Below the pieces are notes generated by a model. The model saw only the letters and a list, made by a program, of their open reading frames with translations, was not told the DNA's origin and did not search any database. A stretch of DNA of 63,598 nucleotides, counting the filler, from Ministeria vibrans ATCC 50519 (Eukaryota > Protista > Filasterea): assembly GCA_943704425.1 (NCBI GenBank). It is 5 parts of 5 records of this genome, joined end to end, with 100 filler letters (N's around TTAATTAATTAA, not from the genome) between each part and the next. Parts side by side here need not be neighbours in the genome. Positions count along the whole stretch, not along the records: positions 14,110 to 28,912 come from CALSCP010000232.1; 4 more parts are not named here. The stretch is one strand, 5' to 3'. The translations under genes were made by a program, and so were the position numbers. Below are positions 14,221 to 25,222 of the stretch, one piece after another; position 1 is the stretch's first letter, and each line of letters opens with the position of its first letter.

Positions 14221-15044
14221 CCGTATCGACGGAGTTCCAGTTGAACGAAGTCGCGCTCGGCCAGTTGGTGAAACCTAGTGAAAACAACGCACAGACGCTG
14301 GGTGAGGCGGTGGGACTCGCAGAATATCTTCGTACCCTCGTGATGCTTCGACGTCAGAACGACATACTTGATGCCGCTCTTCGAGAAGAGCGAGGCCCAC
14401 TCGTCGGGCTAAACAAAGACCGTTGGTCACAATAGGTTAACTAACAATAATAATTATTATTATTATATTTCCTTCCTCCTCTTACGTTGAAGAATTCCGC
14501 CTTAAAGCGGGGTGCATACTCAGCATACGTGAAGCCTGGAGCTTCAGTGCGGTTCACAAACTCAACGTACGCCGGAACCTGCCGCACAAACGCGCTTGAG
14601 AAACACAACAACAACAACAAACAAACTCACTCACCCACTCACTCACTCACTCACTCACTCACCTTCTCCGTACGCCACTTGTCCCAAAACCATTCACCGC
14701 TTGCTCCTCCATTCTCCGTTCCAAACGACGGCACCGAGAAGACGCCCCAGTGAATGAAGCTCCCGATCTGAGTAAAGGAGGACACAAGACGATTTGTCAA
14801 AACGCTCAATTCTCCTAATGAGTTTTGTTTACTTATTGTATAAATATGTATACCTTCACATCGTCGTACCAGCCAGGGTTCTCTCGGGAGTCAAGCGAAT
14901 CCCTGCACAACGGCCAACGCAAACGCGTGAGAGACAAAAGAACGATCAGAATTTAATTTACCAATCGGGAGAAAACCGCGCGGAAACAACGCCAGCGCAA
15001 AGCGCAACAAAGGCAACGGTGACGAGCCAGCTCACACGAGACAT
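14221..15044 (-). CDS. Alpha-L-fucosidase, GH29 (FUCA-like), signal peptide; 3' part lost at contig edge
   Basis: [118 protein letters not shown], which are GH29 signature motifs. Confidence 0.95.
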
Positions 15045-15270
15045 AGAAGCAATAAAATTGAATTTTGAATGATTGTCGATTGAACTTTTGATTTTTATTT
15101 CGAATTTTAAATCGTTGACAGAATTAATTTTTATGTCAATTCGCTCCTCAGTCGTAGTAATGAGTGTAACAAAAAGCAGGCACACACATGGAAGGTAAAA
15201 CTAAAACACAAACGGATGGGCGTTTGCATATTTTTTTTTCATTAACAGAGAATAGGAAGTACAAGTTACA

Positions 15271-22650: not shown

Positions 22651-22960
22651 GAGGGTGAGGTTTCTAGTCGGTCGTATATTGAGGTGCAATGAGGAGCACG
22701 CCCCAAACAAACAAAGGAAACTGTGTGTGAAACAAAATAAACTGAAAAAGAAAGCCAAAACGATCTGCATTTAAACCGCAGCACTCGAACCAGCGTAATC
22801 GGCTGGATGGCGGATACGCTGTAGGGAAGAGTGCATTTCTCACGTCAGGCGGCAGACTCCTCACTCACTGAGGCCGATGCGCTTCCGTGCCTGCCCTTGT
22901 ACGCGAGGTAGCTTCCCTAGAGACTCAACTCATTTTCAATAATTTTAATATTTTATTCAG

Positions 22961-25222
22961 ATGCGACGACCAACTTGCTTTGATGGGGCCTTGTTGGGCA
23001 ACGGACGACAGGGTCTTATGGTGTGGCTTGGGGACGAGCACACTTTGAATGTGACCTTTGCGATTGCGGGATTTTGGATTCACAGTGAATTTTCGACCAG
23101 ACACAACACGCTCAGCTACGCAGCGGTGCGCTCCAAGATGGCGAATGCCTCGTCGGAGGCCACCTCGCCGAATATCACGCGTCATGATCAGCGAAAAAGC
23201 TTCCAACTTGGTGGCGGGCGCTTGACGCTGCGCCTGCAACGCGACTGGCGCTTCGCAGCCATCAGCCTCGACTTGGATTCAGCCACTGTCCGGGTGTCCG
23301 TCAACGGAGACGCCTCTGAACCGCAGCCAATGTGGCAGCTTGTGCTGACACAGTGTGTCGATATGGATATGGCGCACATCGCATGCGAGCCTGCGTCTCT
23401 ATTGACGTCGACTGGTGACATTGAGGTATCTCTTCACGCCGCGTACGAATTTGTCAAAGATGCGCTGTCCGCCACATTTCCTGCACCCCAATTCTCCAGC
23501 TCGGGCAACTCTTTTACACAGTGTACGCCGTTGCGAGAAGCATCTTTGGAAGCGTCCTACACGCTCGACACGGAGAGAGGGCGCATCTCGCTTGAGACCA
23601 AACTTACCTACACTGACCGTCCAACCAACAAAGCTCTTGCCTCCCCCTCAACAAGGGACTTATTTTGGCCGGCGTACTGGCGCAGTGTGCCAACCCTTTG
23701 CATTCCCGATGAGCCCCTTTTGGCAGACATTTTAAGGCGTGGACTCTATCTGCAGGCGTCGACGACACCCGCTCATGCGCGGAGTGCCTGCACCTTGCAA
23801 GGGGTGTTCCTCGAGGATTTCCGAGTGCCTCCCTGGAGCTGCGACTATCATTTTAATGTAAACCTTCAAATGGTGTACCTTCCGGCACTGGCCACAGGAC
23901 AGTATGGTCATTTCGAGCCACTCTGGCGCATGTTTCGCGAATGGATGCCGCGTTTGCGTCGACATGGTCAATCGTTTTTTGGCGTCGACGATGCCATTCT
24001 CTTGCCACACGCTGTGGACGATCGTTGCGAGACGGTCGATCAATTTTGGACGGGTTCAATTGATCAGGGGTGCGTGGCATGGATGGCGCATCTTGCTTGG
24101 CTTTATGTTCGATTCACCGGCGACACGGCGGTGCTTGACGACATAGCTTGGCCGCTGCTCACAGGTGCTTTTGGTGGATTCTATGCCATGTTGGAAGAGG
24201 AAGAAGATTGTGGGGTGGAGAGAGAGGAGGGAGCTGAGCAACCGTTGAGGCGTCGTTTGTACCTACCTGTTTCTGTTTCTCCCGAGTACAATGGAAGTCG
24301 CATGTCGGCCATTGGGGCCAACGCGTCGTTTCAACTTGCTGCTCTACACATGCTCTGTCGTGTGCTTCCTCTGGCTGCTCAGCGTCGCGGCTGTCCAGTA
24401 GATGCTCGCTGGCGCGATGTGCAGCAACGCCTTGCATCCTACAGCCTGGTCGAGGCGCCTGATTCGCGCGAGGAAGGCGTGGTGCGCACGACACGGCGCA
24501 TCGGCTTGTGGCGCGGCAAAGACCTTGAGGACTCGCACCGACACCACTCGCACTTGGCAGGCATCTACCCATTCACTACCATTGATGTTGACCACGAGCG
24601 AGAGCTTGTTGAGGCATCTCTCTTGCGCTGGACACGTGCCGGTTATGGTGCATGGAGCGGCTGGAGTTTTCCTTGGGCGGCGTCCATCAACGCCCGAGTG
24701 GGACGTGCACGCACGGCGATTGCACAGCTGCGCCTGTGGAATGAAAGCTTCGTCTCCGAGCACTCACCCTGTCGGCTTGCCTCCTTCCACGATGCCACGC
24801 TTCCTGGTCTCACCGTGTTTTGTCGTGCCACGCGATCTCCCGTCTTTCAGCTCGATGCCGCCATGGGTGCACTCAGTGCGGTGCTTGATTTGTGTGTGCA
24901 CACCCGTGCCGATGGCGCTCTCGCTGTGTTTCCGAGCGACGTGTCCACATTATGGCCGCGCGGCATATCCTTTACACGTGTCCGTGTACCCGGTGGTTTT
25001 GAGTTGAGTGCCAGTGTAGCGCGACGAAAAGGACTGCGTGTCGAGCTGGTGTGCGTTCACCCGCTCGTCCAGTCTGTGTCGTTGGTTGTGCCCCAAATGG
25101 GCGCACTGGCTGTGTCAGTGACGCACGGGAGTGCTACGATGACGAACAGTGCCGAGACAACTGCACGGTTGGTGTGGAATGGGATAACCAATGGAGATTC
25201 ACTCATCGTACACACTCAATGA
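22961..25222 (+). CDS. GH95-like alpha-L-fucosidase/galactosidase, (alpha/alpha)6 barrel, intronless CDS
   Basis: 753-aa ORF with LGNG, TLQG..WSCDYHFNVNLQMVY, SVSPEY, HRHHSHLAGIYP, GWSFPW..ARVG, FQLDAAMG, VPGGFELSA. The GH95 catalytic N-x-N, SPE Glu and FQ(I/L)D Asp are present. No signal peptide is visible. Confidence 0.85.
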   Translation: MRRPTCFDGALLGNGRQGLMVWLGDEHTLNVTFAIAGFWIHSEFSTRHNTLSYAAVRSKMANASSEATSPNITRHDQRKSFQLGGGRLTLRLQRDWRFAAISLDLDSATVRVSVNGDASEPQPMWQLVLTQCVDMDMAHIACEPASLLTSTGDIEVSLHAAYEFVKDALSATFPAPQFSSSGNSFTQCTPLREASLEASYTLDTERGRISLETKLTYTDRPTNKALASPSTRDLFWPAYWRSVPTLCIPDEPLLADILRRGLYLQASTTPAHARSACTLQGVFLEDFRVPPWSCDYHFNVNLQMVYLPALATGQYGHFEPLWRMFREWMPRLRRHGQSFFGVDDAILLPHAVDDRCETVDQFWTGSIDQGCVAWMAHLAWLYVRFTGDTAVLDDIAWPLLTGAFGGFYAMLEEEEDCGVEREEGAEQPLRRRLYLPVSVSPEYNGSRMSAIGANASFQLAALHMLCRVLPLAAQRRGCPVDARWRDVQQRLASYSLVEAPDSREEGVVRTTRRIGLWRGKDLEDSHRHHSHLAGIYPFTTIDVDHERELVEASLLRWTRAGYGAWSGWSFPWAASINARVGRARTAIAQLRLWNESFVSEHSPCRLASFHDATLPGLTVFCRATRSPVFQLDAAMGALSAVLDLCVHTRADGALAVFPSDVSTLWPRGISFTRVRVPGGFELSASVARRKGLRVELVCVHPLVQSVSLVVPQMGALAVSVTHGSATMTNSAETTARLVWNGITNGDSLIVHTQ

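Follow-up and report, generated by a model that had tools for sequence, protein, structure and literature searches.

The locus described here lies on contig CALSCP010000232.1 of the filasterean protist Ministeria vibrans ATCC 50519 (NCBI GenBank assembly GCA_943704425.1). The whole stretch of DNA that was analyzed, called the window below, is 63,598 nucleotides (nt) long including filler, and the contig corresponds to its positions 14110-28912. All positions are those of the window. The contig is eukaryotic nuclear DNA and carries five genes: a partial gene for a GH29 alpha-L-fucosidase, a gene for an S1 sulfatase fused to EGF repeats, a GH95-like gene, a tubulin-like gene, and a gene for a DUF427 protein (Table 1). 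The GC content of exons is ~53-60%. Introns are 48-265 nt in length and richer in AT, and every one of them has the GT...AG boundaries. The contig is gene-dense, and the genome is very compact. An earlier reading of this DNA, made without any database search (the sequence-only reading), had proposed that the GH29, sulfatase, and GH95-like genes are consecutive on one contig. The gene models and domain matches agree with it, and this trio of genes is the subject of the present analysis.

Table 1. Features of contig CALSCP010000232.1, in window positions (aa, amino acids; ORF, open reading frame).
Feature	Position	Strand	Evidence or remark
Sulfatase-EGF fusion gene, 15 exons, 2025-aa type I membrane protein	15271..22650	-	14 GT-AG introns of 48-265 nt
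Exon 1 of the fusion gene, start codon and short hydrophobic signal peptide	22610..22650	-	in-phase splice to TGTAG acceptor at 22387
Sulfatase domain, five exons, with Ser/Thr/Pro-rich linker	20311..22386	-	PF00884; human IDS match
Sulfatase exons S1-S5	22386-22137, 21871-21563, 21496-21174, 21095-21065, 21010-20311	-	
YHYH-like region, eight very small exons (43-167 nt)	19068..20175	-	weak PF14240 match; YHQH and DGFPIYGP motifs
Last exon of the fusion gene, 3.7 kb	15271..19004	-	PAN-like start, ~20 EGF/cbEGF repeats, cupredoxin, juxtamembrane region, transmembrane helix, tail
Cupredoxin domain between two EGF arrays	~17323-17730	-	PF00127, 22.4 bits, above the cut-off
GH95-like ORF, 753 aa, intronless, without signal peptide	22961..25222	+	PF22124, E 9e-40
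Spacer between divergent start codons (22650 / 22961)	22651..22960		310 nt; head to head
GH29 alpha-L-fucosidase, N-terminal ~150 aa	14225..15044	-	PF01120; GT-AG introns; signal peptide
GH29 exons	15044-14962, 14902-14854, 14767-14663, 14578-14486, 14408-14336, 14274 to ~14225	-	ATG at 15044
Assembly gap	21981..22019		within intron 2 of the fusion gene; (CT)n and (CA)n microsatellites on either side
Divergent tubulin-like gene with introns	25350..26911	+	PF00091 on first exon, E 1.3e-9 (tubulin GTPase domain)
DUF427 protein gene	28002..28607	-	PF04248, E 2.6e-6; Ser-rich N-terminal half

The 15 exons of the sulfatase gene, when joined in a script for frame continuity, give a frame without internal stop in which all phases are consistent. 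The joined model was used for this frame check alone, and the homology searches were performed exon by exon. The domains of the predicted protein are, in order, a signal peptide, an IDS-like sulfatase domain, a Ser/Thr/Pro linker, a YHYH-like region, a PAN-like region, EGF repeats with a cupredoxin domain, a transmembrane helix, and a tail. The acceptor used by exon 1 sits within the apparent start of the ORF, and without exon 1 the sulfatase has no signal peptide. The linker exon (S5) ends in a phase-1 donor, and the acceptor that follows after 135 nt is in phase 1 as well. Separate sulfatase and EGF genes were considered and rejected, based on the lack of a start codon with a signal peptide, the distance of ~135 nt between the two parts, and the in-phase GT-AG intron. 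A YHYH/EGF gene of its own is unlikely, since it would have neither such a start codon nor space for a promoter. The fused "sulfatase-receptor" gene claimed in the sequence-only reading remains the best model of the predicted structure.

The exon translations include the motifs of S1 sulfatases: CGASR (formylglycine), LIDDL, GKVFH, PHLPF, SDHGW, and EWTK. The formylglycine motif, carried by exon S1 upstream of the assembly gap, is intact, as are the metal-binding Asp-Asp and Asp-His residues of S1 sulfatases. Human IDS was the top PDB match for exons S1 (E 5e-19), S2 (E 4e-10), and S3 (E 3e-15), ahead of 6hhm, and the matches are collinear. The sulfatase is IDS-like, as had been stated earlier. 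We take IDS to be the type member of SulfAtlas subfamily S1_7, from which we infer the S1_7 label for the sulfatase of M. vibrans. The C-terminal subdomain is very divergent and had no match in PDB.

Downstream of the linker, one piece matched PF14240 with E 0.002-0.003 and 18-19 bits against a cut-off of 25 bits, and the other exon-bearing pieces tested showed no match. Due to this single match below the cut-off, the region is named YHYH-like only. Micro-exons of 43-55 nt with introns of 48-71 nt are seen at 19608-19753 (minus strand), in contrast to the intronless 3.7-kb and 2.3-kb coding stretches close by. The last exon starts with a Cys-rich, PAN-like part (PAN_3, weak, E 0.035). The EGF repeats match PF00008 in 18 stretches (E 4e-114). 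The cupredoxin domain is of the plastocyanin/azurin type and has the Cys-x2-His-x3-Met copper-ligand pattern in its sequence. A cupredoxin domain inside the EGF arrays of a membrane protein is an odd combination. The EGF arrays are followed by a beta-rich juxtamembrane region, one more EGF, the transmembrane helix (~15589-15669), and a tail of 105 aa. Several EGF repeats are duplicated internally, at 16637-17301 and 17714-18264 (minus strand), with 95-96% DNA identity. The duplication is recent, and the assembly may be collapsed or expanded there.

Relatives of the fusion protein were sought with several of its parts. Exon S5, searched against 1.84 billion representative proteins, matched itself and then nothing better than E 2e-8. 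Its nearest named relatives were a transcript of the labyrinthulomycete Mucochytrium quahogii and IDS-like proteins of the mussel Dreissena. The longest S5 match was 1284 aa, and thus none of the relatives approaches the 2025 aa of the fusion. The domain scan of long S5 matches took in P0131, P0155, P0174, and P0176 and left out P0163 (896 aa) and P0175 (895 aa). P0131 (1284 aa) has PKD domains only. The sulfatases P0155 (850 aa), P0174 (944 aa), and P0176 (690 aa) have no EGF, and one of the three is fused to GH113. The search with the juxtamembrane and tail region returned generic EGF proteins alone, and that of ESM Atlas generic sulfatase C-terminal clusters alone, below 0.9. Within these limited searches, the predicted sulfatase-YHYH-like-EGF-cupredoxin architecture was not seen elsewhere.

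The GH95-like gene is placed head-to-head with the sulfatase gene. The distance between the two ATG codons, given as ~310 nt in the sequence-only reading, was measured as 310 nt, and this spacer is a possible shared promoter. The PF22124 match covers residues 248-643, the (alpha/alpha)6 catalytic domain. When a clade profile was used, the GH95 structures 2rdy and 4ufc were matched with E 3e-39; with the single sequence, E was ~1e-13. H297, N299, N301, E442 (in SPE), and D632 (in QLD) align with the motifs YH-x-N-x-N, SPE, and Q-x-D of 2rdy, 4ufc, and 7znz. We assume the roles known from AfcA, in which the Glu is the general acid and the Asn-x-Asn pair and the Asp activate water. The residue ahead of the Asn pair is His in the M. 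vibrans sequence, in its clade, and in the fucosidase FucOB, but Thr in the L-galactosidases BoGH95A (4ufc) and BH0842 (2rdy). This His/Thr position presumably governs the preference for fucose or galactose. The N-terminal beta-sandwich (PF14498) had no Pfam match; the profile weakly matches the N-termini of 2rdy and 4ufc, and the GNG-x-x-G-x-M-V motif is present. NCBIfam includes no model for this clade, and no solved structure of the clade was among the structure matches.

The bacterial homologues have a signal peptide, whereas the M. vibrans copy has none and starts where the mature bacterial proteins start. A hidden signal-peptide exon within the 310-nt spacer was also considered and rejected, as no candidate was present in any frame. 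These two observations bear out the absence of a signal peptide noted earlier.

The best 120 relatives of the GH95-like protein in an all-domain collection are 36-43% identical to it, and the named ones among them are all bacterial, the best of them at 38-43% identity (Cytophagales, Spirosoma, Planctomycetota, and Verrucomicrobia). The gene context of the best match is bacterial, and a relative is encoded on 367 bacterial genome stretches. The scan of JGI metagenomes for close relatives yielded nothing over 34% identity. In the LG+G4 tree, the M. vibrans sequence is positioned inside a Bacteroidota clade, beside another long branch. When that branch was removed and a mixture model was used, the sequence shifted basally, close to the rows of Planctomycetota and Chloroflexota. 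The approximately unbiased (AU) test did not reject a topology that unites all 46 close bacterial rows in a single clade and leaves the M. vibrans sequence outside it (p 0.73). Due to this model-dependent placement and the AU test, the claim is limited to a "bacterial-type clade" and no donor is named. From these comparisons, the GH95-like gene belongs to this bacterial-type clade and was probably acquired by horizontal transfer. Among the 164 positions invariant in 17 diverse bacterial homologues, 134 are kept, against an overall identity of ~41%, which argues for continued selection.

The GC content, the GC content at third codon positions (GC3), and the codon use of the GH95-like gene equal those of the intron-bearing neighbours on both sides. 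This host-like composition and the intron-bearing genes on both sides exclude contamination and indicate an integrated, ameliorated gene. An assembly artefact, whether from a false join at the N-gap or from bacterial contamination fused to eukaryotic DNA, is scarcely credible as an explanation of the locus. The gap and both ends of the contig are in microsatellites, where assemblers fail, but the GH95-like gene, sulfatase exon 1, and the tubulin-like gene share one ungapped stretch. On one side of the gap is the donor GTACGT, which follows 22137, and on the other the acceptor TTCAG, which precedes 21871; both are in phase 0. In the comparison with human IDS chain 6ioz, the exon before the gap corresponds to residues 4-77, the exon after it to residues 81-192, and the next exon to residues 195-304. 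Order, strand, and phase are unbroken over the gap and the IDS residues are consecutive; thus, no exon is missing and the join, whose confirmation the sequence-only reading had called for, is consistent. Judged from its flanks, the gap is an unspanned intronic microsatellite within one gene. No independent assembly spanning 21981-22019 was found. Exons S3 to S5 recur in a separate metagenome assembly: a 1056-nt contig (L088) of ENA assembly ERZ23497376 from sample SAMN09406036 is near-identical to 20228-21271, with 2 mismatches over the 1056 nt and a different length of the ATT repeat. It was the only match of this closeness. Such near-identical DNA indicates that the organism was present in this environmental sample.

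Long (GA)n, (CA)n/(CT)n, and (ATT)n microsatellites were observed at 14110-14230, 21938-22120, 20177-20250, 27440-27560, and 28770-28912. Di- and trinucleotide repeats of this kind are found at both contig ends, at the N-gap, and within introns. As they mark the contig ends and the gap, the breaks of the assembly are considered to be repeat-driven.

The GH29 gene is truncated in the (GA)n run at the edge of the contig, so that it is visible only to about residue 150. Its five introns are 59-86 nt long, have GT-AG boundaries, and agree in phase. Three exon-bearing pieces align collinearly with PF01120, at positions 34-64, 67-95, and 96-124. Judged by eye, the N-terminus is a signal peptide, and the ATG is 226 nt from the stop codon of the sulfatase gene (15271) on the same strand. 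The claim of a GH29 gene with a secretory signal ~230 nt downstream of the sulfatase stop was therefore accurate. Among solved structures, exon 5 is closest to human FUCA1 (7pls) and a Thermotoga GH29, and the visible part is predicted to be of the GH29-A type.

Neighbours of the GH95-like clade were counted in 78 bacterial loci within a 10-kb range, with hidden Markov models built from verified sulfatase and GH29 ORFs of these loci. GH29 or an S1 sulfatase is present within 10 kb of the GH95-like gene in nine of the 78 loci. Eight of the 11 such ORFs within this range are immediate neighbours (GH29 in four loci and sulfatase in four loci), while ~20% is expected at random. The loci in which GH29 and/or an S1 sulfatase adjoins the GH95-like homologue are L021, L055, L059, L064, L065, L067, L068, and L079. 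In L064, from a Cytophagales genome bin (JAKSDO010000203.1), GH29, GH95-like, and sulfatase genes form one row on the same strand (L064:8277-13735). This row is adjoined on the opposite strand by genes for a mutarotase, an MFS transporter, a galactokinase, and an NrtR/AraR-type regulator. The GH95-like clade is worth assaying, and its occasional partners, namely GH29, sulfatase, and galactose catabolism genes, suggest what to assay.

The existence of such a row in bacteria raises the explanation that the trio was copied en bloc from an operon like that of L064 and that two of the copied genes subsequently acquired introns. This is very unlikely. The M. vibrans sulfatase matches the bacterial partner sulfatases in the N-terminal motif region only, with 35-39% identity over ~70 aa and no match in S2 or S5, while it matches human IDS along S1 to S3. 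The nearest named relatives of S5 are eukaryotic (the labyrinthulomycete and the mussel). Introns number at least five in the ~150 aa of GH29, five in the sulfatase, and zero in the 753 aa of GH95. The gene order and strands also differ from those of L064. The match limited to the motif region, against that to human IDS over three exons, and the unequal introns indicate that the M. vibrans genes did not come from the bacterial partners. The eukaryotic trio, if functional, was thus assembled secondarily.

Although we hold it tentatively and at slightly less than even chances, we infer that the adjacency is not accidental and that the three genes constitute a real functional neighbourhood. To our knowledge, GH29, GH95, and S1 sulfatase are all rare in eukaryotic genomes. 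Their joint rarity makes a chance trio improbable, unless the region is enriched in hydrolase genes. The same three families adjoin directly in some bacteria, and the GH95-like ORF is intact with its catalytic residues kept.

In the proposed mechanism, the GH29-A-type alpha-L-fucosidase would enter the secretory or endolysosomal route. The formylglycine-dependent IDS-like sulfatase would be the outermost domain of its protein, held by the YHYH-like/EGF/cupredoxin stalk on the outer or lumenal face of a membrane. The GH95-like protein would be an inverting exo-glycosidase of bacterial type with a putative fucosidase-type active site, most likely acquired horizontally and by now host-like in composition. 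The divergent sulfatase and GH95-like genes may share the 310-nt promoter. Desulfation outside the cell or in the lumen would precede the removal of fucose, and together the three enzymes could trim glycans that carry both sulfate and fucose. As the substrate, a fucosylated sulfated glycoconjugate or an algal or mucus glycan is more likely than classical fucoidan. A more specific proposal is that a eukaryote built a glycan-utilization cluster by convergence with bacterial operons, from the transferred GH95-like gene, the shared promoter, the anchored sulfatase, and the secreted GH29. It would enable a protist to break down and feed on sulfated fucosylated glycans, a role hitherto attributed to bacteria. 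We consider this proposal rather unlikely.

Several points weigh against a functional unit. The catalytic residues of GH29, the nucleophile Asp and the acid/base Glu, fall off the contig, beyond 14110. The GH95-like sequence is on a long branch and has lost 30 otherwise invariant residues, several of them in the N-terminal domain and near the catalytic Asp, so the enzyme may have changed or lost its activity. No GH29 or sulfatase partner is present within 10 kb in 69 of the 78 bacterial loci, and at most 10 of 80 bacterial loci share any one neighbour family. The compartments predicted for the three proteins differ: the GH95-like protein would be cytosolic, the sulfatase at the surface, and GH29 in the secretory route. 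With this difference, a simple relay needs the import of oligosaccharides. All spacers on the contig are short, so closeness itself carries no weight, and the next two genes, tubulin-like and DUF427, are unrelated. Fucoidan degraders are defined by the S1 subfamilies S1_15/16/17/22/25 (PMC13668718). The IDS-like sulfatase is outside these fucoidan-linked subfamilies, and fucoidan as the substrate, which the sequence-only reading had brought up, is not supported.

It is therefore a serious possibility, though short of probable, that the three genes are neighbours without a shared pathway. The sulfatase protein would then function in adhesion or the matrix and remodel the cell's own surface glycans like SULF, GH29 would be a lysosomal housekeeping enzyme, and the bacterial GH95-like gene would have been inserted by chance, perhaps where accessory hydrolase genes are tolerated or accumulate. 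The different histories of the genes, with zero introns against many, favour this explanation, as do the different predicted compartments and the fact that the solved structures closest to the sulfatase and GH29 are those of animal lysosomal enzymes, IDS and FUCA1. Short spacers are uninformative in a compact genome; the tubulin-like gene starts ~130 nt from the GH95 stop codon. Most bacterial GH95-like homologues have no sulfatase or GH29 nearby. The explanation of unrelated neighbours is opposed by the joint rarity of the three families, which makes a random trio unlikely, by their direct adjacency in some bacteria, and by the intact GH95-like ORF. No related eukaryotic locus was found in the relative searches with the GH95-like gene, sulfatase exon S5, and the receptor tail, and no precedent for a eukaryotic GH29-sulfatase-GH95 cluster was found in the literature.

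The remaining genes of the contig are located beyond the GH95-like gene. The C-terminal part of the tubulin-like protein, 290 aa in length, showed no Pfam match and no relative in a word search. From the match of its first exon, the gene is predicted to be a very divergent tubulin paralogue. It is followed by the DUF427 gene on the opposite strand.

The breakdown of sulfated fucose-rich marine glycans has been described as a speciality of bacteria, encoded in operons or polysaccharide utilization loci (PULs). If the three genes do function together, they would represent a rare carbohydrate-catabolic gene cluster outside bacteria and fungi. Part of the cluster would derive from a bacterial gene gained by transfer, and one of its products would be a surface-tethered sulfatase with an unprecedented architecture. 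Such a locus would also mark protists as consumers of these glycans. Even without a shared pathway, the 2025-aa sulfatase-YHYH-like-EGF-cupredoxin membrane protein, with no detectable relative of the fusion, is a finding in its own right. The same applies to the uncharacterized, widespread bacterial GH95-like clade with its predicted fucosidase-type active site.

Each component can be compared with known enzymes. The GH95 enzymes AfcA of Bifidobacterium bifidum (2eab), FucOB (7znz), BoGH95A (4ufc), and BH0842 (2rdy) have the (alpha/alpha)6 catalytic domain in common with the GH95-like protein. The His ahead of the Asn pair is shared with FucOB, although the characterized GH95 enzymes are only distantly related to the M. 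vibrans protein. Human IDS (5fql, 6ioz) has the same formylglycine, metal-binding, and sulfate-binding motifs as the M. vibrans sulfatase, whose C-terminal subdomain is very divergent. IDS is a soluble lysosomal enzyme, whereas the M. vibrans sulfatase heads a membrane protein of 2025 aa. SULF1 and SULF2 are S1 sulfatases at the animal cell surface, where they edit extracellular sulfated glycans. The M. vibrans protein resembles them as a predicted cell-surface S1 sulfatase. The SULFs, which are secreted and bind via a hydrophilic insert, fall in a different S1 subfamily and lack EGF, YHYH, cupredoxin, and transmembrane parts.

As gene clusters, the yeast GAL and DAL clusters are eukaryotic counterparts. 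In them, non-homologous genes of one route are adjacent, sometimes with divergent promoters and sometimes with transferred genes. Co-regulation and a shared pathway are demonstrated for GAL and DAL; in M. vibrans, the genes are adjacent, and the pathway is suggested by the family names and the bacterial linkage. In comparison with bacterial PULs, the M. vibrans locus is eukaryotic, has introns and separate promoters, and carries no SusC/SusD, TonB-receptor, or regulator gene on the contig. Its sulfatase is IDS-like and outside the subfamilies of fucoidan degraders, and its genes are not orthologues of one bacterial block. The term "PUL-like locus" used in the sequence-only reading therefore stands for the adjacency of the three families, but in the lack of a SusC/SusD-type element it holds only as an analogy. 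The co-regulated, compartmentalized pathway put forward in the same reading is a plausible hypothesis, partly supported by the bacterial linkage. A GH29/GH95/sulfatase cluster is reported for Wenyingzhuangia fucanilytica (cited in PMC13668718). There, as in the Cytophagales row of L064, the same three enzyme families are physically adjacent, as they are in M. vibrans.

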